64,000 nt of DNA from Podarcis melisellensis (Eukaryota): NCBI GenBank assembly GCA_964234715.1, contig OZ174280.1. One strand, 5' to 3'. The position numbers and the translations under genes are program-made. Shown here piece by piece: positions 3,925 to 25,900 of the stretch; within the stretch, counting starts at the first letter, position 1; each line of letters opens with the position of its first letter. The notes under the pieces are model-generated. The model worked only from the letters and a program-made list of their open reading frames with translations, had not been told where the DNA came from and made no database searches.

Positions 3925-4750
3925 GTTCAAAGTGAATTAATACACATTACCATCGGAAGAGGGGATCCCTGTAAGAGTATTAAACCTGGAGATTAAAATT
4001 ACCTAAATGCACCACTGGCTTCAGGCAGTGTGGGACAAGGCAGTGATGCAGAGAACAGGTAAAAGAACATGGTGGGGATAGCAATGGCTTCAGTCTAGGC
4101 CCAAGCCTTGAAGCATGTTAATATGAGGGTGCCATTTCAATGCTAAGAATAACCCACAGCAATGTCAGTATAAGCTCATTACCTTTTTGAGGTTCCATTC
4201 ACTGACCTGGAAGGCTGTAACACCCCCCTGCCCCCCGCCATGGAAAGTGGTTATAGGTAGCCAGTGGGGAGATATAAACCTTCACTTGCTTCATCTATTT
4301 TGCATTCAAAATATCACAAGAATTTCCCTTGGATAAGCCTGACTTCTGTTTTGCAAGGGAATTCAGTCCCGCTTGCAAATCTAGCACCATGATACCTTTC
4401 ATAAGCAAAAATATGTTGGTGAAAAAGGTAATTTAACAGCAAAGAATAATTATATGTATGAGTTGTTATTCCCTTTTCAGTGTTCACAGGGATTGTTTTG
4501 GTTTTGGGAACCATTTTTAAATGACTGATTCTGAAAGAGATATTTAGTCCATTTCAGCTGAGTAGGCAGAGAGAAATTCTTAAAAACAAATTTTGTTAAA
4601 TTGATGGGTAAAAAACATGGTGTTTGAGGGCTTTCTCATCTGTATTAGGTTTTTTTACAGCATATACAAATGACAGTTTTGCATTGTTAATCTCCAGATG
4701 CATATAATCTCATAGCTAAACTGAAAACAATGTTTTCATGTCTTTTTAAG

Positions 4751-4950
4751 GAGTGATGTGTATTGTACAGAGTCTCCAAGTATGCCTTCTGATTCGGAGG
4801 TAAAAGAATGCACTTCACAGAGGAATAATTCTTACGAGTGCATTTTTCAGCCTTTTTATCTCCTGTCTGGATACACAATGTGGATCGAGATTAAGCACTC
4901 ACTGGGGACAGTGACATCACCACCAGTGTGTATCCTTCCAAAAGAAGTAG
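4751..4950 (+). CDS. LEPR: Leptin receptor coding exon (CRH2, leptin-binding region); first LEPR exon in the window
   Basis: tttttaag|G...GTAG|gtaagt; 200 nt. Encodes SDVYCTESP...YECIFQPFYLLSGYTMWIEIKHSLGTVTSPPVCILPKEV, homologous to LEPR YECIFQPIFLLSGYTMWI. Confidence 0.96.
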
Positions 4951-5045
4951 GTAAGTGAAAACATTTTCTGAGAGTGGATCATTGATAAGTTTGGGCCTCC
5001 CAAGGTCTCCTAGCCCAGGGCCTCCAGTTGCTTAAATTTGGGCCT

Positions 5046-5109
5046 GCCTGGGACCTTCTGCATGCAGGGTATATGACTCTACCTACCACTGAGCTATGGC
5101 CATTCCCCC
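5046..5109 (-). mobile_element. tRNA-derived SINE head (Squam3-like), truncated
   Basis: Reverse complement reads ggggaatggccatagctcagtggtag...gcatgcagaaggtcccagg, a tRNA-like head with an A box. Confidence 0.6.
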
Positions 5110-6194
5110 TGGTGCTTTTGTACCCACAGGTTGCAGTATATTGCCTTTCTCAAGGGACTTGGGCATGCTATCCAATTCATTAGGAGTTTCTTTCAAATGA
5201 TGTTGCCGAGGAAAAGTAGTTTGTAAAGTAGCTTTTCACTTTTGTAGAATACCAATAGCTTTTAAGAGGAGGGGGGATTCTGGACCCTAGCCACACTTTC
5301 AAGATGCATACAATATGGAAAATCCCAGCCACCCCACAGTAATTCAGACTTTAATTTGAAAACTGTAAATTACAGAACTATAATATGCTTCCTTCTCGCA
5401 TAAGTGCCTTTGTGCCTGCCCCCTCCAGTTCCTTATCTCCCCCAGCCCATGCACACACACTATGGTCTCTTCTCTAAGCATTTGTTTTTCTTATGGTATT
5501 TAAATTATCCAGTCAATGATGGTGAGCTTGTGTGATGGCCAGTGACAGCTGGTTTTATTAAAACTGAAAGAAAATTAAGTGTATGAATTACCACAGCATG
5601 CAATAACTAGATATTTCCAACAATGGCTTTAATTTTCAATATTCCTCATCTCCTTTTCCATTTTCCATCACTTCCTTGTTACTTTCCCCCTGTTATAACT
5701 TGTCTCCAACTGAACATATACCATTCATAGGGAGTTTATCCCCAAACTACACCCAGTTCATATGGATTCTCAGCTTCTTGGTGATGATACGCTTAGTATC
5801 ATACCCAACGTTTCAGATGGCATGTGGAATAGAACATAAGGAATTATGAACATTTTGAAAAGAAAAGCTGTTAATAACAACGAAATGTTCATGGCTTTAA
5901 ACTGGGGTGGTACCACCCTAGTTATGGAATATGCCCTCCAAAGTGAGGCTCATCTGGTACCTATATGAAGACATTTTTATTCTCCCTGTGTTTTTCCATT
6001 TTATAGAGCATAGAGTTCTGCTTCAGTGGATTGTTTTATTGAGATTGAGATTGTTTTATTGAGAGGAGACCCACTGAAATTAATGGGCCTAACTTAGTTA
6101 TGTCCATTAGTTTCAATGGATCTGTTCTGTGTAAAACTTAGTTGAATGCCACACAATATATTTTAGCCCTTGAAACCATAGTTTAGTCCAGTTG

Positions 6195-6198
<4 letters not shown>

Positions 6199-6272
<74 letters not shown>
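6199..6272. repeat. Compound (TC)n(AC)n microsatellite
   Basis: About 25 TC units followed by 12 AC units. Confidence 0.95.
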
Positions 6273-7029
6273 CACGGCCATCCTTGTGCTTGCTTTTTTT
6301 AAACTGGTATTGAAAAACTTCAAAATTACTGAAGTACATACAAAACAGTTCTTGCATGAAGGAGTGCCTTAAGATCTTCAGAGGAGGCTCTTTTCTATGT
6401 TCCATTGCCGGTACAAGTTATTAATGTTGTGGTGAGGAAGACAGCCTCTCTTTTGTGATGGCACCACAGCTGCAGAATGTTCTCCTCATAGAAGCATAAC
6501 TGGTGCCAGTGTTGCGCTGATTATGGCTCCTAGTTATCTATCTACCCAGGCATCTTAATGTCTTATACTTGTGATTGTTGAAGTACTCTGCTGATTTGGC
6601 TGTCCCTGTTTCTGTCTATGTTATTTGCTTTGCTGCATTATTTTGGCCTGTCCCATTTTATTCCATGCTTCTGTATAGCAAGCTGGCATCAGAATGAGCC
6701 AACATGGTGTCCTTCAGATGTTTATGGACCACACTGACACCATCCCTGATCACAGGCCTTGCCCCCTAAGGATGATGAGAGCTGGAGTCCAACAACACTT
6801 GTAGGGCACCATTTTGGGTACCAGTGTATAGATGATGGTCAAGCTATAAATATTTTTAACAAAATGTAATAAATGAATTGTTAAGAAGACAGGATACAGC
6901 TATAATGAATATATATAAAAAAATACATTGCTCTAATGCCAGTTTGGTAAGGAAGAACTGACACACAGCTTTATAGATTCTATTAGAGACCTCATAAACC
7001 AGTAAAATTTATTTTGTTTAACTTTCTAG

Positions 7030-7178
7030 TGAAGCCGTTTTCTCCCTCCAGTGTCAAAGCAGAAATTACAGGGGAAGCGGGACTGCTGAATGTGAGCTGG
7101 AAAAACCCAGAACTTCCAAAGAATGACCTCCAGTTTCAGATTCGGTATGCTGTCAACGGAACAGAAATTGCCTGGGAG
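7030..7178 (+). CDS. LEPR: Leptin receptor coding exon (CRH2)
   Basis: tttctag|TG...GAG|gtatgg; 149 nt. Encodes VKPFSPSSVKAEITGEAGLLNVSWKNPELPKNDLQFQIRYAVNGTEIAWE; phase-compatible with its neighbours. Confidence 0.96.
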
Positions 7179-8045
7179 GTATGGCCACACTTAATCTAAA
7201 TTAGCCTGTGCATCATGAGATGCAAGGGTGCAATGGCGTTTTGCTGCTAGTTTGTAAAAATGTGTGGATTCCAGCATTTTGTTTGTCTAGCAAAATAAAC
7301 ATTTGTGACATGCCTATCTTCAGTAGATCAACTTTCACCCATTGTGTGTGAGGGAGGGGGAAACTGGGGTGTATTTTCCACGCCAATGAGATTTCCACTA
7401 TATGATGGGTTATTTTCAATTATGAACAATTACAAACAAAAACTATATTTTAAAGTAAAATGTAATGAAAATATTGTAATCTTTCTTTAAGAAAAACCCA
7501 CAACTTTATTACAACTGAGAACCAATGCTAATAGTTTTGTGGGGTGTTTTTCTAACTCCTGGTAGAAAATTGCCCTTGGTTGGACAAATATGGTTTGTGC
7601 CCATTTGCTGACACCCCATAAACTTCATGACCTTTCTTGACCTCCTTCTGCCTATTTGTCTATGAAAAAATGATGGGATGCTTTACTACACCAATCTGTT
7701 AACATTGGCTGGCTTAGTAAACACACACAAAGACAAAATTCATTGCATTTCTGGTGCAGTGTTTGTTTGTTTGTTTTCAGAAGGAAAATGGAAAGTGGTA
7801 ACTGGCTGAAATTTGGGCATATTTTACAGGTGACAATTTGTGACAGTGTCCAGGGAGAACTGTTCTTCAGGTCAGCTTATGTGTGACTTGCACAATGAAA
7901 AATGCACTGGGGAGTGCTTTGGCCCCTACAAATTGGATGAAGATTAAGTAGCAGTTAGCCTATTGAAGATTTAAGATCTTGGCCTGTCACTCAGAAATGA
8001 TTTTGTTTGATTTTTTGTTTGTTTAAACATCCTTTTTTGTTGCAG

Positions 8046-8205
8046 GTGCAGGAGGTTTCTGATCCATTAGTTAGCTCTGCCAGCACAAAGGTGCAGGATC
8101 CCTGCGCAGTATACGTCATCCAGGTGCGCTGCAGTGTGATTGATGGAGTGGGCTACTGGAGTGATTGGAGCAGACCCGCCTATACAGTTGTTAAGGATAT
8201 CAAAG
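8046..8205 (+). CDS. LEPR: Leptin receptor coding exon with the WSXWS motif
   Basis: ttgcag|GTG...AAAG|gtcagt; 160 nt. Encodes DPCAVYVIQVRCSVIDGVGYWSDWSRPAYTVVKDIK. Confidence 0.97.
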
Positions 8206-8325
8206 GTCAGTCAGTGTCTTACCTGTATGCTTTCAGTTTGTTGGGGTTGGTGTTTTTTGTTTTTTTACTAAATTTATAACCAGATAGGTTGTTGTTTGCT
8301 TCTTACTGTATTTTCACCCCCCCAG

Positions 8326-8408
8326 CTCCCTTGAGAGGACCTGAATTCTGGAGAACCATTAATGAAGATTCAGTAAGGAACCAGAAAAATGTTACTCTTT
8401 TTTGGAAG
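8326..8408 (+). CDS. LEPR: Leptin receptor coding exon (FNIII)
   Basis: cccccag|CT...AAG|gtaaat; 83 nt after a 120-nt intron. Encodes [28 protein letters not shown]. Confidence 0.96.
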
Positions 8409-9512
8409 GTAAATCAATGGAGGAGGGTAAATGAGATATTTGAAATCTATTTCAGGTTTATTTTTTTGTGCGATGTTCATGATATATATTGTGGGTGTTG
8501 GCTGGCTTTGAAGGATACCAGACCTAAGACACTGGTAATTTCTGTTAGCAAAACCAGTGAAACATAGGTTTACAATAGAGCTCTGTGACAGATCAGAATA
8601 TGATGTTTGGTGTGGGGCAGGTGGTAATGGCTTGGAGAAAATGGCCTTGCAAGCCAAATTAGGATTGTTGTCTGTCTAATTAGGCTTGTACGTCAGAGCT
8701 TACCATGAAGATCATCCCATGATGATGACCCGCCACTCTAGGCTGACAGAAAGTTTCCCATTAGGCACAGGAAAAAGATCTCTAACAAAGAAAAGAGCCT
8801 CTTGAATCTCCAAGTGCCACCTTTTTAATAAACAGAAACATTTTCTCATGAAGAATGAGAGAATCTGTTTTTGGACATGGTCCAATCCCTGTTGGCCAAA
8901 GCTAGCAGGGGCCTGGCAAGTAAGAACTATTCATAGATTATTATTCAAAAGGGGAAATTGAATTAAGTTAATAGCATTTCAAGCACCCTTACTGCGCAGC
9001 CTGCCAGGATGTCAGACATTCCCTTAACAATTCACAGGTCACTCATATTTGTTAACATCACTTATCAAATAGGAAGAAAGGATGATGATTTGGTAGGTGT
9101 CTGATTCTGAATGACAAGCATTAATTCACAAAGGAAAAGGCTGTTTGAAATCAGGTTTCGTATGTAAAATTTATTTCACCAATTAAAAACCCAAATACTT
9201 CTCTTTGTGCTACACTACACTTCATACTATAAAACCTAAGTTTGATTATTTTAAACCCAACATTGCTTGCCCAGCAAACTGTGTTAAATATTTCAATTTA
9301 TATTTATTGGAATATAGAAGTAATCGAAGGTGGACTGTTATAGGCAGTTATGGACAGATGCATGGTAATTATTATAAACTGTAGCTTTTAGTCTTGCTAA
9401 CATAAAAATGAAATACCAACCCTCAATTGCTCCTTAAAAAAACATACACCTCTGCCCAAACCAGCCTCAATCCACAATTGAACTGCCTAATGTATCTGAA
9501 TTTTTCTTACAG

Positions 9513-9729
9513 CCACTGATGAAGAATCTTTCCTTATGCAGTGTGCTAGACTATGTGGTTGAGCATAATACTTCAGAAAACATTACTTGGTCTGACTATG
9601 TAGAAAATGATACTGCCTACACATTTTCATGGACGGAGGAGGTACATGCCATTAAGGTTCTAGCTGTCAACTCAATTGGAACTTCCTCAGTCAATTTCAT
9701 TTTAACTCTATCACAACAAATCAGCACAG
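9513..9729 (+). CDS. LEPR: Leptin receptor coding exon (FNIII)
   Basis: ttcttacag|CCA...ACAG|gtaaga; 217 nt. Encodes PLMKNLSLCSVLDYVVEHNTS...VLAVNSIGTSSVNFILTLSQQIST. Confidence 0.96.
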
Positions 9730-10120
9730 GTAAGAAAAACATTTTTTGATAGCTTCAAGTATTGTTAGCTCAGTAATCTAGTTTGTAATAAACTGTTCTC
9801 ATTTTGTAATGTGTTCATGTTTAGACAAGTAGTTATTTGAGTGGTGAGGCCATGTTATTGCTCTTCTACCTAATTAATCATAGGAGTTTCCGCTGCCAGC
9901 AGAAAATTAGGAGGCAGGGAAAGCTAGGCCACATACGGTAGTTCCTGCCATCTGGGCAGGAATTTGGGTTGGGGGTGGGGAATGCAACTTTCATCAGGTA
10001 CCTCCACATGCCTAAAAAAGAAGGATCTTCACTCTTCTCTGTAGCATCTGATGAGTTCTCTCCTAATTTGTAAGGAATAATGTACCTGATGACCAATATG
10101 CTGTTTTCCTGTTTTGTCAG

Positions 10121-10303
10121 TAAACATTGTGAAGTCTCTCAGTGCCTACCCAGTGAACAGCAGTTGTGTCATTGTGTCCTGGACACTTTCGCCTGTGGCT
10201 TATATAATTACATCTTTTGTAATTGAATGGACAAACTTAAACGAAGAAGAGCAGATTAAATGGATTATGATTCCCTCAAATGTTAGAAAGTACCACATTT
10301 TGG
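10121..10303 (+). CDS. LEPR: Leptin receptor coding exon (FNIII)
   Basis: ttttgtcag|TA...TTGG|gtgagt; 183 nt. Encodes [25 protein letters not shown]...[16 protein letters not shown]. Confidence 0.96.
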
Positions 10304-10911
10304 GTGAGTTTGTACTTAAAAATCTATTACAGCTTCTCTTGTGTTTCAATATCTTCCCACCAGTATTTGATTATAGATAAAGATTTACCGCAAAACTGTA
10401 GAGGCTAGCAACTATTGTACATTTAACATAAATTCCAAAAGGTCTCCACAATAGCCTTTTATTTAACATTGGCGTACAGTGCAATTTGCTCTGTTAGAAA
10501 TGGTGTTTCCCAGCTCATCTTTGAAATTTATTGTGGATTATCCTTCTTAAGACAAGACTGATACAGTAACTGAATGGTCTCTGTGTGAGATGAACAGTTA
10601 CAGAGGATTGTTATGTGTAGTGACTTTTTATTCTTTCCTAATTTCTAAAGGCTGTAAAGCAGGGATGGAGAACCCATGGCCCTGCAGATGTTGTTGCGTA
10701 ACTGCTCCCACTATGCCTAAACAATGGACTTGCTGGATGGGATGAACATATGAAGGAACACATTAACCCTAATGATAGAAATCAAGAGAGATGCTCATTT
10801 TTCAGCGTTGCAAGGCCCACACTGTTTTACGGATTTTATAGATTAGGAAATGTTAAGAAGTTTTAGTATGTATGCCCAAATTAAAAATGTGCTATGTTGT
10901 CTTTGTTCCAG

Positions 10912-11007
10912 ATAATTTCATTCTTATTGAGAAATACAAATTTAGTTTGTTCCCAATAATTCCTGAAGGAGTAACAAAGCCCACAGTGACATATGGATTC
11001 TCCAAAG
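10912..11007 (+). CDS. LEPR: Leptin receptor coding exon (end of the membrane-proximal FNIII)
   Basis: gttccag|AT...AAAG|gtgagc; 96 nt. Encodes DNFILIEKYKFSLFPIIPEGVTKPTVTYGFSK. Confidence 0.95.
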
Positions 11008-11501
11008 GTGAGCAACTGGCATTTTTAGTACACTTTTCCTTCAGACCAAGATTTCTTGCTCTAACTTTTAATGAGAAAAAAAATCAGATAATACGTTGGC
11101 AATGGCATGGCACATCTTGAGTCTTGATTATGCCAGGAAAATTCAATAATTTTTAAATGAATAATCTTAATGATCTGTAAGCAATTCCAATCTCTCTACT
11201 TAAAGCATACATGAGCATTTCATTATTTTTACTTAATTGCATGGTTTCAAGAGAAGAGAAAGGGAAAGTCCCATTGCATGAGCAGAATGCCACTCACACA
11301 ACATTGGATACAACTCTATATATCCAAGTCTCATTTAACTTTATGGAATAACAAATCAAGTTCAACCGTACGAGCTGATGCAAACAACCAAGTCTGCAAT
11401 CTTATGGTCACTTAATTTGGAGTAAGGTTCATTCTGTAGGATTACATTGTAAATATTCTCTGTAGTGATAGCTGTTTTAAACTGCTGGGTCTTATTTTCA
11501 G

Positions 11502-11604
11502 CTGGAATTGAAAAACAGAATGATGTGAACTTCTATGTGATTCTACCCCTAGTTATTTCATGCTCCGTTTTGCTGCTTGGAGGTCTTTTGGTCTTGCACC
11601 AAAG
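11502..11604 (+). CDS. LEPR: Leptin receptor transmembrane exon
   Basis: attttcag|CT...CAAAG|gtaaac; 103 nt. Encodes AGIEKQNDVNFYVILPLVISCSVLLLGGLLVLHQR, a hydrophobic helix. Not in the ORF track; translated by hand. Confidence 0.95.
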
Positions 11605-12048
11605 GTAAACCTTTCCTGTATTGAATCTGTTTGCAAGTTTAGATTGAGATGAATAATTTGAAAGGTGTTATGGATTAATCCATGGAAAGGCAATTTCCAG
11701 TAGCAGACAGCAGGGACGGGGGACGACGACAACAGTGGCGCTTACTTGAGCTCCCGCAAGTGTGCTACTGCTGCTTACTGGGAAGGAGAGTGAAAGGAGC
11801 AAGGAAACAGGAACATCTGTGTTTTGCAAGAACATTGGCAGGTGTGCCGCAATGGCTATGCCATTAGGTAATTTTTGAAATTAGGTAATTTTTAAATTCA
11901 GTTGACATTTTTAAAGCATCTGTAGGTGCTATTGGTTTCAAGATGGCTTCTAAAAAGAATAAATCTTTATTTGTGAAATATGTATTCAGAGTGAAAAGTG
12001 ATTATATCCTTCACTGTGCCAAATCAATATCTTATCGGCATATTTCAG

Positions 12049-12124
12049 AATGAAGAAATTATTCTGGGATGATGTTCCAAACCCCAAGAATTGCTCTTGG
12101 GCACAGGGAGTTAACTTCCAAAAG
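12049..12124 (+). CDS. LEPR: Leptin receptor Box1 (JAK-binding) exon; last exon common to long and short isoforms
   Basis: tatttcag|A...AAG|gtatgg; 76 nt. Encodes [25 protein letters not shown]. Confidence 0.97.
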
Positions 12125-12541
12125 GTATGGATCCCCACTTAAATACATTTCAGTGATTTGTGAGCTTTATTTGATTTTAACTAATTTATTTACTCATCAA
12201 GTTTTTTAACAACCCTGTAAATAATGGCCATGAATAAAGAAATGAAACTTAATCATGTGCCTGCTACTCTCATGCAAACTTAAATACTAGAATGAACGGG
12301 GCTTTCTGGAAATGAAAGCCAATGCCTACTATTAAATTGATGAAATTGGGTTCTACATGGGTTCCACAGGTACACATCCAACAAAAAATGCCCTAATCCA
12401 GGGATCTTTTATGTGAATTGGAGACACTTCATCACAAGAAGCAACCTCTCATGCTCACAGAAATATGTGCATGGCTCTCCTCTCTCCTTTGAATATAATA
12501 AAGTAGCCCATGTGAAGAGAATATTCTGCATGCAATTGGTG

Positions 12542-12830
12542 CATAGGAAGCTCTTAGAATGAGTCAGACCATTTCACTTAGTATCTAACTTCCCCCAGCT
12601 TGGTTCCCTTTCAGATGTTGTTCAACTCAATATCCCATCAGCCCCAGCCAGCATAGGTAATGGTTGGGAATGATAGGAGTCCAACAACATCTAGAGGGCC
12701 CTAGGTTGGGGAAGGCTAGTTTACACTAACTGGTAGGAGCTAGGTTTTCACAGTAACCTTTCCAAATCCTACTGGGAAATGCCAAGATTCAACCTAGGAC
12801 CTTCTGAATGCAAAGCAGGTGCATTGCCAT
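12542..12830 (-). mobile_element. Decayed Squam3-like SINE interrupted by a hAT MITE (~12587-12718)
   Basis: Tail cataggaagc..tgagtcagacca on the left, head gattcaacctaggaccttctgaatgcaaagcag on the right, and a palindromic MITE between them. Confidence 0.55.
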
Positions 12831-13119
12831 AGTGAATGGGTACATTTCTATAGGATTTTGGTGCATTTATTGGTAAACCGGACTCTGCTAGTGCAGCTGT
12901 TGTAGCTTTAATGACAATGTTTACAATTAGATAATTTTACCTTGGAATCACAAATGTTATATTAAAAATTGAGATGGGCACTAGAAATATCCTAATGATC
13001 AAGGAGAATGCTTGCTTATTAGGTTTTCCCACCATTATAAGTTATTTCAGTTTTCATTCCCAGTGAAATATTTATTTTCTCATCTTTATTGTTAATTTTA
13101 TTTCATTTCATTTAAACAG

Positions 13120-13137
13120 AGAATGGACATTCTTTGA
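13120..13137 (+). CDS. LEPR: Alternative terminal coding exon of the short leptin receptor isoform (LEPRa/Ob-Ra-like), RMDIL-stop
   Basis: Pyrimidine tract plus tttaaacag|AGA ATG GAC ATT CTT TGA, phase 0 like the Box1 donor. Human LEPRa ends in RTDIL*, and the following agtctaatcatgatcact matches its 3' UTR start as recalled. Confidence 0.88.
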   Translation, partial: RMDIL

Positions 13138-14084
13138 AGTCTAATCATGATCACTGCCCGCTGAACCAATGTGACAGCTCCCAGACTTCCTATACAGAGT
13201 TGTTAGAAGAATTATCTATTTGAATTCAGAAGACAGAATTACTTACATATCATTTCATTATTCTGCTGATTTTGTTCATACATAATAGTGCTGGAAATGA
13301 TTTTGTTCAAAAGTTGCACTACTGGTATACAATTTTGAGAACACTTTCTATATTTCAGACCAGGTAAAGGGTTTGCTGGGTTTAAAGGGAGCATACATAT
13401 CAAGATAGAAGTTAGGAGGACATGCTACATTATGATTTAATAACATGGGAACAAGCCTACACTTGAGAGCAACCCTCATCCCTTTCTTTCTCTTGCTTGG
13501 CTGGGAGGAGGAGTTTGGACACCTTTAGCTCAGCTTGTAGTTTATTGCAGTTTGTCATGTCATCCAGACCAGCAACTTTGGTTAACATGGGCGAATTTTG
13601 GTTACAAACAAACTTACTTCAAACTGCAGTTTCTGAAACAGGCTTGTTTAAACTAACCATAGTTAACGTTGATGACAAGTCCATAACTGAATGATATGGC
13701 AAACTGTTGCTGTTTGCTGGCATCTGTCTGGTGTCTCACTTTACTCCCCAAGACTCCTGTTAACCAGCCTTAACTGACATGAATGCATAGAGAGACCATC
13801 AGTAGTATATGGCTGACTAAATGAGGGGTGGCATAATGGGAAGGGAACCGGATTTTGCATTTAAGCCTGATATTTCCCATCCTTGGTTTACAACAATAGC
13901 AATAGGAGTCCAGAATGCCATGGCCTTAGAAACATCAATCTTTCTGCCATATTTCCATTTATTTATAAATGGTCTTTTAAAATGCTTTGCTAGTTGAACC
14001 GACACTTCACAGTATGTGCTGCTGAGTGTGTTGACCACCTAGAACGTAATTATTCTGTGGCTTCAATAGAGCTCTACGTATGTA

Positions 14085-14323
14085 CAGTGGTACCTCGAGT
14101 TACAAACGCCTCAGGTTACACATGCTTAAGGTTACAAACTCTGATAACCTGGAAGTTACTTCAAGTTGAGAACTTTGCCCCAGGATGAGAATGGAAATCA
14201 TGTGCTGGCGGCGAAGCAGCAGCAAGAGGCCCCATTAGCGAAAGCACGCCTCTAGTTAAGAACAGTTTCAGGTTAAGAACGAACCTCCGGAACGAATTAA
14301 GTTTATAACTAGATGTACCACTG
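14085..14323. mobile_element. Tc1/mariner (Tigger-like) MITE, CAGTGGTACC family
   Basis: ta|cagtggtacctcgagttac...gtttataactagatgtaccactg|ta; same subfamily as 34011-34236. Confidence 0.85.
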
Positions 14324-17300
14324 TAGCTGAGTAGCATAGTCAGTAGAGGCACAGCCCTGAACTCCTCCCAGTTACCTTACTCTAATATTGCCTATAAATT
14401 GAACAGGAAGCAAGAAGAGACTGTCATGAATAAGTAACCACATCTAAAACAGTTTTATTCAGGAAGAAACCCTCTCTACTTAGTTTGATTAGTAAGAAAA
14501 GTACCCAATTACTCTGACATTATGGCTTTTAAACTTTCGACTGACTTTGAGGTTATCAGTTGGAATATGAAATAGGAACTTCCTTAGAAACGGAACTTCC
14601 AGTTCAAAATCCTTCAAAATAGGGCACTCTGTGTTAATGAGAAGCTATTAGATTCTATGGGTCTGTGATCTTCTTTGTATGAAGAGACTTTTCTTAAAGA
14701 CAAGAGATGCCTGACAACACTATTACGGAAGTACATGTGATTTCTGTTCATGTCCATCAGAGTACTGAATGTCACACAACAAGATATATGGAAAATCCCA
14801 CTTGTTTGTTTAGCTATGCACATCTACTCCACTTTAATTTCATTTCATAGATGTATACATCTCCAAATTGCCTTTGAAATGAACATAATTCTGAAAACCT
14901 TCTTAATTCCCTGACTGGGTCCTCTGTGGTTATGCATATTACAGTTTCTAGTTAGTCTATTAAACTCATTTTTCTTTCTTTATTGTATTTACTTGACTAT
15001 ATCAATAGCGTATTAGCATTTTAAAAAGCAATGCCAATATATGTAACAGAGGATGAGTTCTGAAAGCAACAGGATTTTCCATGCCCTCCCTCCAATTTCT
15101 GTTTACGTCAGTGCACTTGGTGTAGAAGTTCAGTTTTAGAAGAAGCTCGTAAAAATATTGAACATGTTTGAACAAAAAGTTTATTATTGGAAACACTAAA
15201 GGGGCTATACTTCCTAGTATAAGTATAGCACTTGTGTACAGGGCATTGTACCTATGGCTCAATGGAGGCCTTTTTCTACTTTCACCTCTTGAAATGCATG
15301 CAGAGGTGAGAACACAGGCATCACACCAGGGTATTGCAGGGGACAGGAGGTATTTGAACACCTACCATCCAGCCATTCTTAATTACTTAGGCATGGGGAG
15401 CTGGGGATAGGGAGCAGGACGAGAGGGAAGACAGAGAAATAAGATTCTGCCCACACCAGAAAGGATGCCCTAAGGTAACATAGAAATACCAAAATGTAAT
15501 TGAAATTTTCTACAAAAGAAAAATGCAACATAAACAAAGGTGCATGCAGTAAAAATTAAATTAGTCATCTTCATTAACCTTAGTTGGTCTACTCTTGAGT
15601 AGGAGTAATGTTTCAGACAACCTCATGTCTACAGAATATTGAAAAATCATTATTTTTTGCAGCCACACTCCAATCCTTCAAAACTACCAAGTTACAGTTT
15701 CCTCAGTGAAGTCAGTGGGATCACTTTTTCATATCGTGAATACAAATAAATTGCATGTAGGACTTTGAGTGACTGTATTTTGCACTCTCTCGTTACCTTG
15801 CAGTTGAATCCAAACTAAATTTTATATGACAGCTACTGAAGTTATGAATGCTACCTTCATGTTACTTTTCACAGGCTTAAATTGCTGTAAAAATGTTTTC
15901 CTGGCACTCCCATTTGATGCATATATTCAAGAGCAAATATTTAACAGCCAAATGCTTAAGCAATTTACTCTGCATTTAACTATTTTATCATTGTAGCATT
16001 GTGGGGTGTTTTTTGCCAGGAAACAGTACCTACAACATCTAACTCATATTAACTCATATTAATTCATATTCTAATTCATATTCATTCATGCTAACATATG
16101 GCTTATTTGATATATGCAATCTGTGTCCTTGATTTGACTCTGTAGGTCAAGTATCAGAGAGCTGCTTTAGAAAGCTGTAGTGGTAAACTCAAGCCCTATC
16201 ACTGTGTGATCTGTGGGAGCCTCATATGTCTCTCTGTACAGAAAATCTCTATAGCACCCAAGGGAGCCCTGTGTTATATAAGCAGTCTCTCTTCTCCTAT
16301 TTTAGCTACTGCAATTTTTTGTATTTTGATAGTCATATAGATTTATAAGCCACTTTTCTTTAGTTTCTTCTCTGTTGGGCTTATAAAAACTGCCTACCTG
16401 AGCAGGGTAAGAGGAGAAGCTATGCACCTGGAATGCATAGCCTTATCCCATGACTCTAGAACTAGCGCTGGGTAGCTAGTAGGTAGGAAGGAAGCAAAAT
16501 GGCATTCCATTTTAATCAATATCTGATCGGAGTATGGGTTTAGTACCACTGGATACAAATTTGCAGGAAACAGTTTTGATTTTTCAAGAAGCCAGAATAA
16601 TTCCCCATGCAGACTTAACAGATACCAGAAAACTTCTCGTCAGAGTAGGGAGCAACTTGACCAGATATCAGGATACAGTAGCCTGTTAGGTATGGCACTT
16701 GACTAAATTCTTGAAGTTGATAAGGGCTGGCTGCTCTTGATAAACACTTGTACCAATGACACGTATATCCATCATTATTTCTACCGGATTGGAGAAGTAA
16801 GGGGTGTAGATAGACCACATCATTTCTTCCATATACTATAGGCTATAAAACTTGTGAACCTTAATTACCCAAGCTGGATGGCTTTGGGTGGACTTTAATA
16901 ATTTGCAGAGACTGTAATTGTTGACCACAGCCAATTTTACTTGTCAACTTGTGGGTTTTAAGTACTGCAAAACTTTGCCCTCCCCATTATTCTCATAATT
17001 CCTCCTAAATGACATGAATGAAAAACTGGCTCAGAGCAATTGCTTTAACAAATTTTGAGGCCCTTTCCCCTGAAGTGGGTGGGTGCTCATTGTGCTAGTT
17101 GTATGAACCAGTTTGCTGCCAAAGTGCACTATAGCCCAGCCCTCCGAAGTAGAAATGGGTAGGAACTTTTTCCTACCAGTCTACTCCAAAGGCATAAATA
17201 GGGAGCAAGACTCAGGGCTTCAGCACTGCCAATGTAATGCATGCATACTTTCTCTTCATTGACAAGAATGAAAATCTGGTTCAGAACAATTATGTTTCCC

Positions 17301-17625
17301 TTTGTTATATAAGCTCATCAGAGACTGACCTGAAATGGAACCTTCAGTATTATCCAAACTCCAATGGTATCATAAATGTAAATGTGTTACAAATTTCTGG
17401 CACTAATCTCTCTTTTGTTATAATGCTTATGCACACTACTTAAAATAAAGCATACAACTTCATGAAATGTGAATGCCATTACATTCATCAGGCTTTTAAA
17501 GTTGTGCCAAATTAAGAATAATAAAATTGAAGTGTTTAATGTATTTCCTTTCCCCCACCTTTCTTTTCTGTTCATTTCAAGTCATTAATTAATAAATGAG
17601 CATTAAAATGTATCTTGTCTTCTAG

Positions 17626-18441
17626 CCTGAAACCTTTGAACATCTCTTTCTCAAGCATCCTGAAGCACTGTCATTTGGTCCTCTTCTTCTGGAGTCAGAA
17701 ATAGTGTTGGAAGATATCAGTATTGAGAAAGCAATGAAAGACGAAGACAAACAAGACTTACTAGCTATTGACTCTCTGTTTGCAACCACACAAGACTTGG
17801 AGCATGACTCAGCTTGCTCTAGTGGCCATTTCAATAGTGGTAGTGTCTCTGAGAATGTCCATGATGCTGAAACCCGTGGTGGAATGACAGGACAATCTAA
17901 TATAAAATATGCAACTATTTTAACCAACTCCATGTCAAGTGGGCTTTATGAGCCATCAAAGGATCTAAGCAGTTCTTTTGTAAGAGGTTTTGTAGGCCAT
18001 GATTCCTTAGTTCCAACATCTTTCTCTGGCAGTTCTTGGGCAATGGGAAATCAGTCACTTCTGCTATTGCCTGATTGCGATGAACACCTGTCCCCCCAAA
18101 AGCTCTCTCTTTCTGTTGTTTCTTCTGAGGGCTTCTCAGAACCTTCAGAGCAGGGTAGAACTTTCAGTGAGGAAGACAGTCCAAAGAGAAGCATGTTCTA
18201 CTTAGGAATGAGCTCACTCAAAAGTGAAAATGACATCTGTTTAACAGAAAGTTCCAATGGGGTTTGTCACTTTCACACCAATGCTCTAGCTGAAGGCATG
18301 AAGTTTCCTCAAGATATAACCAGTGATCTAAATCCCTTTATCAACAAGTGTGAAACCCCTGTTCAAGCTTTCATACCATACATGCCACAGTTCCAGACCA
18401 TGGCAATTAAATTGCATGAGACAGCCAGTGGTAAAGTCTAA
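17626..18441 (+). CDS. LEPR: Leptin receptor terminal exon of the long signalling isoform LEPRb
   Basis: tcttctag|CCT GAA ACC; 816 nt to TAA. Encodes PETFEHLFLKH...GPLLLE, IKYATIL (Tyr985-equivalent, 17908), SMFYLGM (Tyr1077-equivalent, 18199) and the YMPQ STAT3 motif (Tyr1138-equivalent, 18379). Confidence 0.97.
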   Translation, partial: PETFEHLFLKHPEALSFGPLLLESEIVLEDISIEKAMKDEDKQDLLAIDSLFATTQDLEHDSACSSGHFNSGSVSENVHDAETRGGMTGQSNIKYATILTNSMSSGLYEPSKDLSSSFVRGFVGHDSLVPTSFSGSSWAMGNQSLLLLPDCDEHLSPQKLSLSVVSSEGFSEPSEQGRTFSEEDSPKRSMFYLGMSSLKSENDICLTESSNGVCHFHTNALAEGMKFPQDITSDLNPFINKCETPVQAFIPYMPQFQTMAIKLHETASGKV

Positions 18442-19126
18442 GCTGCCACCTATTGAAGTGTACTACTCTTGATGTACTCTTGATTAAGGCCTCTTTTCTC
18501 TCCTCGTGATTCACATTTTTCCTCAATGAACAGGCCCATATTTATTTATTTTTTAACTCATAGCCCACATATTTTATTCAACGTTGCACTTCTGTTGCAA
18601 GAATATTGCATTTTCTCCAGGTACAACAACGAAACAGCATTAGGTTCCTGGCAAAATGTGTTTGCTGCCCTCCCCCTGGCTGATAATTCCATTGTAACTT
18701 TTATGTGAAATGTGGCTGAATCCAAATCTTTTGGATGCCATAGTGGCCTTACTAAATTCAAAAGGAACAAATCCTTTCCTCCCCTGTCCCCCATCTGCTC
18801 CATGACTGCATCATTCTGAGAACTTTCAAAACCAGAAAAGGACTCTCTTGCTGTATGGCGCTACTAAAAAAACAAACAAACAAAAAAACCTTAAAAAAAC
18901 AACAACCTCGCTGAGCCTTGTATTATATCACCCCATATTCCCCCCACCATTTTATGAACATTTAAAAGACGTGTGCTTTTCCCTATTCACATTTTTAGAA
19001 ACTTGGGAGAGAAGAGAAAGCCTATCTGTTATCGGAAAGGCAGATACATGCACTCGCACACAGCATGTGTTATGTGGGAGCATATAGTGAGCAACTGAAA
19101 CTGGATGGGTGACTGGGAGCATGGGG

Positions 19127-19132
19127 AATAAA
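19127..19132 (+). promoter_or_regulatory. Candidate proximal polyadenylation signal for LEPRb
   Basis: First AATAAA noticed after the stop codon. Others are at 21518, 22051, 22064 and 24560. Confidence 0.3.
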
Positions 19133-19636
19133 GTGAGGGCTGGATACTGCTTGATCTAGTGAAGAGACCCTTAAAATGTCCCCCTATATTAGATATATTG
19201 ATTTATACTGAGTGTAGGGTGTTTTATGTTATTTTTAGTACCAAACTAAGTGCTTTGCTACACAGTAGACTCAGAACTTACCCACTCTTCTGCTTGTCCT
19301 GTGGCTAGAAAACAAGGTTCCGAACAGCTTTTTGGTTGTCCTGTGCTTTCTAAACATGGGTCTAAGTGGTTTTGCCTTTGCTCCACCACCTCCCCCTGGA
19401 AAACACACTCTTCAGCTATAAACTGGAACAAACAGCAATTTGTGGAAAACTCAATTGCCATTGGCTCCAAATCAGCACTAATCCATGGGCTTTTCTGGGG
19501 AAAAGCAGCCAGGCAAATGCCGGTTGTCCTGAAACACATTATCTGCAAAGCAACTAGTAACAGCTCTCCTCCAAAGAGCACTGTTGTCAAGGGTATTTTC
19601 ATACAATTTTCTAGCCAGGACTTTAATAGAAGGTGG

Positions 19637-19963
19637 CAGGGGCAGCCCAGACTGTTTTGCCACCTGAAGCAAAAAGGGGAGGTGCCACCTCACCTGGCAG
19701 CTGCTGCCCCTGCTGCGTGTCCTCAAAGTCGGAGTCATGGGGCTTACGGTTTGGCTGCGTCAGCTTCCAGCAGTGAGGAGAGGTGGTAGTGGCTTCTCCT
19801 CACTTCTATGCTGGGAGGAGACTGCGGTGGCATCAGAGGAGACGCGGCAGCAGCAGCCAACCCCACTGCCACTGCTTCTCCAGAAGTGGGGGGGGGAGCA
19901 CACAGGGTCAGGGGGTGCTGCCTAAGGCATCTGCCTCCGTTTGCCTCATGGGTGGGCCAGCCT
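19637..19963. mobile_element. GC-rich hAT-type MITE (cagggccggccc-like ends, decayed)
   Basis: Termini caggggcagccc / gggccagcctg around a GC-rich interior; no clear TSD. Confidence 0.5.
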
Positions 19964-22900
19964 GGAACATGTGAAAAAAATGTTGAATAGGTATGGGGGG
20001 GTTGTGTGTGTGTGCTGTCTTAAACAACTAGATGTGGCATTGTGCAAGCATATTCCTAATATCTAATCTCTCAACACTAAAGCTTGTCCTGTCATTTGGG
20101 ATCAGTGCCAGTCTGTTAATATGGATATGCTTGAGCAACACCTGTAATCATGATGATTCGGACCACATTGCATGGAGGGGATGCCTGAAGAGTATATGAG
20201 TACCAACACCTGCATATGCCCAGTCTCTGATTAAAATCTTCAAAGATATTTTTCATCCATTTACCCAGTGTAACAGGGACAGGGCTATCAAGTTCTAACA
20301 TTGTTTTGTTTTTTAAGTGGATTTGTCATTGAGTAAGATACTGTTGCCCTCAGCAATGGATCTTAAAACACCAGCATGCCTTCCTTCATAATTTGGATAG
20401 AAAATTGACAGTGCAAAGTTTGTGTGTGCTCAGAGGTTAAGTCTCAGTGTGCCCAATGAGACTCACTCACTAGTAATGAGTTTAGAATTGAAGCTGATAC
20501 AAAGGTAGCATAGGCTGTGTTCCAATTCCAATGTTGCTCTTCAGCAGAGAATTGTAGAGAAGTGATGCATCTCTGTCCACAAAAAGCAGGGTGGGAACAA
20601 ATGCTCTAGGTATTGTTCTAGGTGGGCAGATAACTCATTGGAATTGGCTTAGAAGAGCCATGCTTCTTCCATGGATTTTGGTGGACTGAATTGGTCTAAC
20701 AAAAGTCCAGGTCTCCAATATCCCAGGTCAACAGGGGTTTTGAAAGCTTTTATGTGGTTGTGGCAAGTCACACTTTTGCCACAACCACAAAAGTGTTCCC
20801 ACTATCCAAAACAGCTGAAAAACCCATTTTTGATAGCACTGTGACAACACTGTGAACAGGCATTCAAAGAGATAGCAAATTTATTGACTTTTACCATAGC
20901 TACCCCAACCACTCATCATTTGTTTGTGTGTTTTTAAATATATATTTAATTAATTGATGCTAGCAACCCTAGTCCATTTCAAAGAGTCTGGTAACAGGAC
21001 CAAGCCACAGCTTTCCTAGTAAGAAAAGGCAATAATTTGTAACTATTTCACCATTCAGCTTAACTTTAGGTATCAAAAGCACTGCAGACTGAAATCTATT
21101 ACATAATTTCTGAAGCTGAACCCACAGTTGCTACCTGTCTAATGAATGTACAGTACATGGAACAAAATCAGCCCTGGAGGAATTGTGTGTTTGGTTTTAT
21201 CAGTGGCCTGCTGTTTTATCTGAATGTATGGGAAAACTCTTGTTGGTTTTGTAAGCAAGAAGCATTACCACAATGAGTTAGCAAGGCAAAACAAAAAAAC
21301 ACTCAGCTCTTTCACCATAGCTCTAATCTTGATTAGCACCTTAACTTTTCTATTTGCTGTGCCTCTGAACTCTGAATGCTGTGCCTTACTGTTTGTTCAT
21401 ACTGCTTAGCTAATTGTCGTACTTTGAAATTCAGGTTAGGAGGATGTAGTGACCCACTTCTAAAGTATACACACAATTCTAGGCAAAATCACGGGTAGTT
21501 GCTGCTCTTTAAGTAGTAATAAAAAAATAGCTTCGTGTTTTTAACTGTAACCAACGAAGAGAAATTTCCCAAGTTTTCAGGAGCTTTATTCTTTGTCTTA
21601 GTTTCAGTGACATAGACAAGCAGAGTGCATACATATACTATCTAGAATTGCTATTAAAATCTCAAAATGACATTCAGTCTTGCACTCCTATAAACTCCTA
21701 TAAAAGAGGCAACATCTGCATATTCTGCATCTACCATCTGCTCTGTTCTATCTATGCCCCAGCCTAATCTTTAGTAATTACTGTAGCTAACGCTAATGAT
21801 GCCTAGGAATAAGGCCTTCGACAGTGAAGATTAGAAGCCTGGGCAACTCTTATATAATGCTTCATTTTACGATTGCTTTTTGTGATTCTTCAATCTATGG
21901 TCTGTTTTCTCAGTATTTCCATTACTTTAGAGCACTGTAATGAGGCTTGTAAAATCTCAGTGTTCAAATTGCCTGGAGAGCGGTGGAGGTGAATAACAAA
22001 ATACAGCCTCACCAGTCGGAATTGCCCTGGGACATTCAAGAGGACATGAAAATAAACAGTTCCAATAAATATGAATATTTTTACCTTCATGGACCAATAT
22101 AAAAAGACAAGGAATTTGCATCATGCAAGTTTTTATCATCATCCCAGTCCACTTATTGTACAATATCTGGAAATTCTAAGAACTAGAATGTATGTAGGTC
22201 ACCAGTAAAATGTTCCTCTAGGTCCCAAGAGGGAGATATGATTAGGTAGGCAGAACCAAATTTGCTTTGGCTGATGTACATGTATTGATGCTCACAGTAA
22301 ATTTGGTCAAGATGCACAGCTTTTTGCCCAAATTCTTTCCTGTTATGTAAACACTGGATATATGATTAGAAGTGAACAGGTCCTCCCTTGATATTCCCCT
22401 GTTTATCCACACAAAGATGAAAAAGACACCGGAGGGGTGGGGTTGGGAAATTTTAAGCATTACACTGATGCTATTTCTACTTTACACTGTTCTGTCAAAA
22501 TATAAGGGTCTATGTTTTATGTTCATGTCATTGATTCATTTAGCCCAGGGCCGCCTATACTGGCAGGCAGCACCTTTCATGGTTTTGAGCAAAAGCCTTT
22601 ATTGATCTGTTACATGAAGCTGTTTTAGCCAGGCTATGCTAGGAATAGAAAATGAGGCCTTATACACAATCCCAGCACTGGTCCTTTCTCATTGTAAACA
22701 GAACATCACTGGTGGTTTCTCCATAGCACTATTCCCCCTCCCCGAAACTAAGTTTAGGAAAAATGTTTGGGTTCTAGATAATAGGAAGAATGCAAAGATA
22801 TCCACGATAAAGTCATGTCCTGAAAAAGCAGAGGACATCCTGACCCAAAGACAATCACTTGCAGTCTTTGTATGCTACCTCCTCATCCCCCACCCCCAAT

Positions 22901-25900
22901 GCTCTCATGTTTCTGGTTACTGCTCTTGCATGCACTACATGTTGCACTCTGATGTCATAAAGACAATTGCAGGTAGTCAGGCAGCCGAAATTGGCCTACT
23001 TCCCAACACAATGCTGATTTATTAAACTGCAATGGCCTTAGGGTGCTTTTGCATTTCCTAGGTACAGGACTAATCAAGCAGCAGCTCAGTGCTTTGGTTG
23101 ACACGGTAGTATCTGCGATCTGGTAAGAGTCAGAGCATTACATGGATAGGTGAAGTGTAACCACCATAGGTGAACTACTTTGGTAACCACCATAGGTGAA
23201 GCATAGTTTCCACCCAGTCCTCAGTGGAAGTGAGCTGGGAGAAGGAGTGCCCTCACCCATAGCTAATAGCCATAGCTGGTTTGTTTTAGTCAATGACAGC
23301 TATTTCCTCATCAGGTACCTCTGCTCTGTGCATCACCCTTGCTTACTGCATACCATTGTGGATTGCTCTAGCAGCAGAGTTGGTAAGAGGACGTTTCGTA
23401 CATTTTGCTGTCAAAATGCTCCCAGTTGCTGTCAAAATGATCCTAGCTCCTACAACCTGCTAAATGCCGCACTGTGAGCAAAGCCCATGCAGGTCTATCT
23501 ATACAGGTATTTAGAAATGACCATTATTATCCTTTGATTCTTACTCTTGTCATTTAAATTGGTGGAACACTGGCCCTGGAGAGCAACATATGAATAGCTT
23601 CCCAGTACTTTCAACAACAGTGTGTGTGATGCGCACATTGTGTAGCAGATATTTATTAGAGGAGTGATATGTTTATATGAACGTGGAGCATAGCTTACAA
23701 CACTTTTTCAGGTGAAAAAGTAGCAAGCTGTATTAATTAACTCTGATTATTGACATTACTTATAAAACCTGAAATAGAAGGCCTGTTCACTACCACATGG
23801 TGCTGTAGGAACAGAGGGATGTGAAGGGAAAGTCAGAAGGAATAACATACCTTCTGTTGACAAGGAGAACCCCATCAGAATTAGTGGGTCCTGCCCACAG
23901 ACTCTATAGCATAGTGCATGCTGACACATGTTATTGGGTAGTACTGTGCCCAAATTGCACATAAACCTGCACTTATAGCTTTTGTTCAGGAAGAATCCAG
24001 GACAGGTGCTAATGGTAGTTTTTAACCAACACCTTCCTATCGATATACCTCAGCCACTGCTAAGTGCAAAACAGGGTTGATTCTTACAACTTTGGTAGTA
24101 TAGTTGTAAGTTTTGCTGAGTGATAAATTATTTATCCAGGTTACGCTTGAATACACATCCAGGTGGAACATCCATACATCCATGAGTCATTTCTGTTAAC
24201 CTTCAAGAAAATAACTCAGATTGAATTCACATATGCTATTCACTATTACGGGTCATTTGCAGCTAGATATGATTATATGATAGATAATCTAACTATATTT
24301 TTCAAATTGTGGCCTGTGAGTGGCATAAGTAACAAGTACCACGTTGCTTTTGTACGTCTGTAGAATTATGGTTTGTTAACCTCTCACGCCATTCTGTCTG
24401 ACTATCCTTGGTATTTGAGTGTAAAAATGTTCTGGGTTTTTGTTCCTGCCGAAACTGTGGCTTGAATTGGGCATTGAACCACGATTTCTTAGTTGTGGGG
24501 TATCTCTTGAGCTCATGCTTTAAAATACTTGCCAGAGTACTTTTGTATTTATTTTTGTGAATAAAATGTTTACTGTTGAGGTTGTATTTTAATAACATCC
24601 TTGTACTCTTCTGTGTGTAGAATCTTTGTTTAACTTTTGGGACGCAAAGCGTCTGGAGAGTTGCAAAACGGAGCCCAGTGAAGAAATTCAGTGACCACAA
24701 TATGGGGCAAGAGCAGTGATGCCCAAGCGTGCAGCAATTAGAAGGTTTCAAGTGGCTACATATTTACGATCTTATGTAGAACATATTTACATATTTTTGC
24801 CACATGTCACTTGCCTTTCAGTGAACCCCACATCCACCAACAGCACAATGGTGACATTCCCAATACACTTATAGTAGTTGATCAGACATTTCTAAGACAG
24901 GACGTTTGCTGCATAGTATCAGATTCTAATGCTTCTGTTACCCAGTGGCACCCAGTGGTAGCAGAGAGCAACAGCTATAGAATGCAACTGACTAAAGACA
25001 TTGGGAGCAATCCAGAGAACATTTACCTTCTTAAATGCCACTGAAATCCTCAACTCTTTGAATTGATGGGGAACCTCAGATCTGGGTGCCAAGTTGGCCC
25101 TCTGATCCTCTCCATCTTACCTTCAGAACTTGTGCCAGGCTACATTCATTTTCATGCATCCTTTTTGGGTGTTTGTGTCTGGCTGGCATGTCGCCCATAA
25201 TTCTGATAATGCTTTACAGAGGTGGGTATGTGAGTGTGTGTAGAAATTAGCATACTTTGCCAAGCTAAAATTCACATTACTTGCTCTATCCACTTTCTCT
25301 CTCTTGCCCTACTCACCATTGGCATGTGCCTGCCCCCCACCCCTGCCATATTGCCCAGAAATCAACAAAAATACTGGCTGGAAAATGCTTCCCTATCCCT
25401 CCACTAGAGCTGTTAATTGAGTGCATAAGGCCCCTTGATTTGAGATAAATTCATATGCACCTGTTTTTCATTAGCTCTAGCCTCTTTTCCAACACCATAA
25501 GGTAAATGCAAGCTCAGAATGCATTAGGGTTATATTCCAGCAATTATACGTGTTCTTTAATTAAAGGTGTGTTCCCAAAAGGAGAGGAACAGCTTCAGCC
25601 TCTTTTAGAGCTCGCAAAAGCCAGGCGATCAGGTGAAGTCTTTCCTCACTCAGGCAGAGTTGTGGCATGAGAAACTGCACACCTGAGAAATGTGAACCTC
25701 TTTTTAGTGCCCTAGTTTAAAAAAACAAAACACAAAAAACAGAAAGGCTACCTCTTTTCAAACAATGTCACTTAGCAACTTAGCTTTAAAGGTTAAAATA
25801 TCATCCAAATATCTGCAGAAAGAGTGGGTGGTTCATCCTGCCTTGACAGCAAAACTCCCACCCATGGTTCCAGCTCTCAGTTGCGAGAAAGATGATGACA

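Follow-up and report, generated by a model that had tools for sequence, protein, structure and literature searches.

Does a lizard leptin receptor gene (LEPR) carry the very short alternative terminal exon with which the short receptor form LEPRa (Ob-Ra) ends in mammals? The question is raised by a 64,000-nucleotide stretch of Podarcis melisellensis DNA, referred to here as the window, which holds the 3' half of LEPR on the + strand at about 4.7-18.4 kb (exons 4743-18441). The LEPR exons were placed by tblastn with squamate LEPR proteins and by direct reading of the sequence, and they show 82% protein identity to Podarcis, 78% to Rhineura and lower values to other squamates. In the protein searches there was no full-length LEPR protein of this species among the matches listed, and the sole near-identical match (99%) among the representatives listed was a 108-residue Logan fragment. 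The features of the alternative 3' end are given in the table below. The intron between the Box1 and LEPRb exons is 5.5 kb long and the RMDIL exon lies about 1 kb into it, on the same strand; the YMPQ STAT3 site is found in the LEPRb exon only.

Features of the alternative 3' end of LEPR in the window
Feature	Position	Strand	Sequence characteristics	Basis
LEPR transmembrane exon	11502-11604	+	...LLLGGLLVLHQ and bases 1-2 of an Arg codon; gt donor at 11605	ORF, tblastn
Box1 exon	12049-12124	+	split-codon Arg and 25 residues ending VNFQK; phase 0; donor gt at 12125-12126	tblastn
T-rich tract and predicted acceptor	13075-13119	+	TTCAT branch-point-like repeats; ends ...atttcatttcatttaaacag	composition, alignments
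LEPRa-type terminal coding segment	13120-13137	+	AGA ATG GAC ATT CTT TGA = RMDIL-stop	translation
Core conserved non-coding block, start of the putative LEPRa 3'UTR	13138-13232	+	directly after the stop; ends near ...TTCAGAAGACAG	alignments
Further 3'UTR-like sequence	13233-13386	+	conserved among sauropsids only; contains CAG/GTAAAG at 13362-13370	
LEPRb terminal exon, alternative to the short exon	17626-18441	+	ttctag/CCT GAA ACC TTT GAA CAT = PETFEH; PETFEHLF...YMPQFQT...; stop 18439-18441	

Joining the Box1 donor at 12124 to 13120 in silico, from the coordinates, gives ...VNFQK-RMDIL-stop in phase 0. The first-pass annotation of this DNA had described the exon sequence, the T-rich tract and the 12124/13120 junction, and all three proved correct to the base on inspection of sequence and translation; the end that it assigned to the feature, 13230, is close to that of the most conserved block, at about 13232. 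The acceptor is 70% pyrimidine at -23 to -4 and has CAG at the splice site, with purines (AAA) at -6 to -4, and the last 25 or so bases before 13120 are nearly invariant across the aligned amniotes; among sauropsids the CAG and the TTCAT motifs do not vary. Together, the tract and the CAG at 13119 qualify as a predicted 3' splice site. Neither AATAAA nor ATTAAA occurs on the + strand at 13138-14958, the first ATTAAA being at 14959 and the first AATAAA at 15745. The nearest canonical AATAAA is therefore more than 2.6 kb downstream of the RMDIL stop, which counts against the segment being a LEPRa exon. With the C-terminal part (residues 660-888) of a database short isoform as query, no lizard transcript fragment was matched; the matches of this search were an incomplete snake protein and a pair of JGI fragments whose tail is RTDIL, apparently from human or another primate.

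Two other splice-related features were observed in this intron. A donor-like CAG/GTAAAG is located 245 nt into the LEPRa exon, and its equivalent in Rhineura is CAG/GTGAGG. Read-through of the Box1 donor (12125-12142, + strand) would append VWIPT-stop to the Box1 exon, with AATAAA at 12233 and 12497, and is possibly the source of a second short tail, distinct from the RMDIL finding. An Ensembl model of Podarcis muralis ends VNFQKVWVPT and an Anolis model ends VNFQKVWTLV...

Eleven other LEPR loci were compared with the window, from Rhineura, Sceloporus, Vipera, Carettochelys, Alligator, Cariama, Rhea, Apteryx, platypus, Coturnix and Corapipo. Mammalian DNA was represented by the platypus, and the human and mouse exon was compared in the form of published peptide tails. 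An exon with intact AG, frame and stop, situated in the Box1-LEPRb intron and in the same order, was found at nine of the eleven. Six of these loci (Rhineura, Sceloporus, Vipera, Carettochelys, Alligator and Cariama) encode RMDIL with the identical 18 bases, while the genomic loci of Rhea and Apteryx encode RMEIL and that of the platypus RVDIL. The alignment of this intron across amniotes, a check proposed in the first-pass annotation, thus recovered the acceptor and R-x-[DE]-I-L-stop at nine loci besides the lizard's own. Similarity to the platypus exon region extends over 144 nt (window 13089-13232, 76% identity, E 1e-23). Within 11400-19500, the only blastn blocks between the lizard and the turtle, alligator and birds were the transmembrane, Box1, LEPRa and LEPRb exons, and against the platypus only the Box1 and LEPRa exons were recovered; the Box1 exon is a conserved block at every amniote locus compared.

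Platypus, squamates, a turtle, the alligator and three birds all have the LEPRa exon in intact form, so it is older than the synapsid-sauropsid split, the age that had been proposed from the lizard DNA alone. As judged from these genomic alignments, it is an ancestral amniote feature under strong constraint, its non-coding part included. A still earlier, pre-amniote origin found no support in the protein models compared, the short LEPR models of a caecilian, a frog and a lungfish having unrelated tails. On present data the exon looks specific to amniotes.

The two loci at which the exon is not intact are both from birds. In the quail (Coturnix japonica, locus 19824-20101) the block is still recognisable (nhmmer E 2e-41) but the exon has decayed: the acceptor CAG has become GGG, codons are altered and the stop TGA has been replaced by TCC. 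In the manakin Corapipo altera (locus 23412-25060) the Box1-LEPRb intron measures about 1.6 kb and contains no N, and nhmmer detected no homologue of the LEPRa block in it. The exon is kept in the DNA of Rhea, Apteryx and Cariama and, by annotation, in swans and a duck. Since ducks and swans, which keep the exon, form the sister group of the galliforms, the losses in quail and manakin are independent. This decay in the quail and absence in the manakin are modestly new observations. A 2026 review of the avian system holds that conclusive identification of a short isoform is lacking for chicken and for other birds (PMC13475205), a statement that agrees with the two losses and is too broad for birds as a whole. 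The short form that the first-pass annotation mentioned for chicken cannot be the product of the RMDIL exon if chicken resembles quail, in which acceptor and stop are gone.

Conservation is not confined to the few codons. The region from -25 to +112 around the exon start comprises 137 bases, of which 18 code for protein, and across ten amniotes it shows 86.3% mean pairwise identity with 82 of 146 alignment columns invariant. The corresponding identity is 86.5% for the Box1 coding exon and 78.3% for the first 137 nt of the LEPRb exon. In the block after the stop, lizard and birds are 91-92% identical. That the acceptor region and about 110 non-coding bases are conserved at the level of Box1 coding sequence is likewise modestly new. 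Two candidate explanations of this conservation were tried and rejected. RNA structure in the conserved 3'UTR is not supported: the RNAalifold fold is weak (-7 kcal/mol) with no compensatory pairs and no covariation. A hidden coding frame is contradicted by indels: in the lizard, frame 3 stays open over some 33 codons, yet elsewhere it is broken or shifted, by 7 nt in the alligator, 1 nt in Vipera and 9 nt in the platypus. The constraint acts on the primary sequence, which fits a putative role in splicing or 3'-end regulation of a very short alternative terminal exon.

Taken together, these results make it highly probable that 13120-13137, with the upstream acceptor and the downstream 3'UTR, is the lizard orthologue of the LEPRa (Ob-Ra) alternative terminal exon, spliceable from the Box1 donor at 12124. 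The exon sequence, its orthology and the purifying selection acting on it are established at the level of genomic DNA, and this lizard very probably uses the exon as its relatives do. One might object that the coding part has just 18 bases and that an AT-rich intron offers many AG dinucleotides, after any of which a short open frame could arise by chance. Nevertheless, when both strands of the 64-kb window are searched, AG followed by R-x-D-[IT]-L-stop has a single match, at 13120, and there is none in 3 Mb simulated with a first-order Markov model of the intron, which excludes an origin by chance; the base-for-base orthology across amniotes refutes such an origin as well, and we attach practically no credence to it.

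A more serious alternative is that selection preserves the block as a regulatory, non-coding element of LEPR, acting in splicing from within the intron or in transcription, and that this lizard makes no use of it as an exon, the intact RMDIL-stop persisting through constraint on that DNA or RNA element. Of the 137 conserved bases at -25 to +112, 112 are non-coding and yet conserved like coding sequence, the acceptor has purines at -6 to -4 and no poly(A) signal lies nearby, all of which would suit such an element. We nevertheless regard it as unlikely, given that AG, frame and stop are kept in ten of ten loci with an intact block, that many squamate gene models use exactly this junction, and that the quail has lost acceptor, codons and stop while most of the block stays. 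The last of these observations suggests that exon function is part of what is selected. It is also conceivable that the exon serves mainly as an internal "poison" cassette, with 13120-13364 spliced onto the LEPRb exon through the donor CAG/GTAAAG; the resulting transcript would still encode RMDIL-stop and might, like its counterpart in the db/db mouse, be subject to nonsense-mediated decay. The consensus at 13365 is good in this lizard and in Rhineura (CAG/GTGAGG), but the GT is missing in Sceloporus, turtle, alligator, birds and platypus, which places this donor outside the conserved design and makes a cassette very improbable as the main use of the exon.

For a LEPRa-type terminal exon, the following mechanism can be proposed. 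The Box1 donor at 12124 would splice to the proximal exon at 13120 and the transcript would be polyadenylated downstream. The encoded receptor would sit in the membrane, retain the complete leptin-binding ectodomain along with the transmembrane segment and Box1, and finish in a 34-residue tail whose last residues are RMDIL. Judging from domain content, with the ectodomain, transmembrane and Box1 exons common to LEPRb, it would have neither Box2 nor the YxxQ STAT3 site. Skipping of the 13120 exon and splicing to 17626 would instead yield the signalling LEPRb, so that the choice of terminal exon would set the ratio of short to long receptor. The nearly invariant acceptor, sub-optimal because of AAA at -6 to -4, and the approximately 110 bases after the stop may be the cis-elements that define and regulate so short an exon, and could do so as splicing enhancers or silencers within the exon, through processing of the 3' end or as elements of the UTR. 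If it behaves like its mammalian counterpart, the short protein would bind, internalise or transport leptin and would signal only weakly (PMC5318964, PMC5855854).

These considerations allow a broader and more speculative proposal, to which we give rather less than an even chance: that the acceptor region and the roughly 110 bases after the stop constitute an amniote-wide cis-regulatory module, kept for more than 300 million years, that sets the choice between LEPRa and LEPRb terminal exons, and that galliforms (quail) and at least one passerine lost the classical short receptor when the module independently decayed in the former and was deleted in the latter. If true, loss of the module would account for the failure of studies on chicken to turn up a counterpart of Ob-Ra, and would be in keeping with the atypical nature of leptin signalling in birds. 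For comparative endocrinologists, the bird losses and the conserved block offer a natural experiment and a defined element to mutate.

The exon itself is already represented in public databases. A search with one extracellular exon (window 9519-9728) led to LEPR proteins of many vertebrates and, through their cluster members, to more than 30 models from squamates, turtles, crocodilians and birds that end VNFQK-RMDIL or a close variant. Among lacertids these are Podarcis muralis, P. raffonei, P. lilfordi X2, Zootoca vivipara and Lacerta agilis; among iguanians Anolis carolinensis X6, A. sagrei, Pogona vitticeps X2 and Sceloporus undulatus; and among other lizards Hemicordylus X2, Elgaria X2 and Rhineura. 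Snakes are represented by Liasis, Ahaetulla, Crotalus tigris, Erythrolamprus and Pseudonaja, crocodilians by four species including Alligator mississippiensis X2, turtles by Pelodiscus X3, Carettochelys, Terrapene X2 and Chelonia mydas X2, and birds by Cygnus atratus X2, C. olor X4 and Aythya fuligula X3. Variant tails occur in Apteryx owenii (RMEIL), in geckos (RVDIL in Euleptes, KVDIL in Paroedura) and in the platypus (RVDIL). Several lizards have no LEPR product other than the short form in their annotation; it is the gene product retrieved for Sceloporus, Rhineura and Carettochelys, and the lacertid models of 888 residues bear no isoform suffix. The annotation of Carettochelys insculpta makes a gene of its own, with 277 residues, out of the LEPRb exon region (locus 67390-70539) and lets the LEPR model stop at RMDIL, probably an annotation split; a 283-residue "leptin receptor-like" entry exists for Podarcis muralis as well.

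As RefSeq and Ensembl models already carry the RMDIL exon across squamates and other sauropsids, it is not novel, and the contribution of the window is one further species beside those with such models. The first-pass annotation had supposed that so small an exon might be missed in annotation, which does not hold for the many squamates with short models, and had expected novelty to be limited to squamates, for which, as for crocodilians, turtles and some birds, models are already public. We found no discussion of this sauropsid exon in the searchable open literature, and reviews of non-mammalian leptin barely mention isoforms (PMC5385356). The conserved non-coding module and the losses in birds are the sole parts of the present results that deserve further attention.

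Among known systems, mammalian LEPRa (Ob-Ra; human HuB219.3, ...RTDIL; mouse, ...RTDTL) has the same arrangement as the lizard exon, with a shared donor after ...NFQK in phase 0, a position likewise between the Box1 and LEPRb exons, and R-x-D-I/T-L followed by a stop. The mouse db mutation is said, in work attributed to Chen et al. (1996) and Lee et al. (1996), to create a donor inside this exon. In human and mouse isoform A, RTDIL or RTDTL stands in place of PETFE at the same junction (PMC6293235), and the initial identification of the lizard segment as the orthologue of that terminal exon is upheld by the common phase-0 junction after ...NFQK (PMC6293235, Table 1). The second residue of the tail differs, being Met in sauropsids, Val in the platypus and Thr in human and mouse. 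Predicted short sauropsid receptors (Podarcis muralis XP_028589014, Zootoca vivipara XP_034978099), with a total of about 885-888 residues, have a predicted C-terminus, ...VNFQKRMDIL, identical to that of the lizard in the window. Other short tails (mouse LEPRc/d, human C/D, Anolis X4/X5, Falco X6/X7, caecilian X4, frog X2 and lungfish X2/X3) use the same Box1 donor and also lack the STAT3 site, but they are lineage-specific, differ in sequence, come from other exons or from intron read-through, and in none of them is R-x-D-I-L found. The switch between short and long leptin receptors is usually treated as mammalian; the genome data point to an exon that was already part of LEPR in the ancestral amniote.
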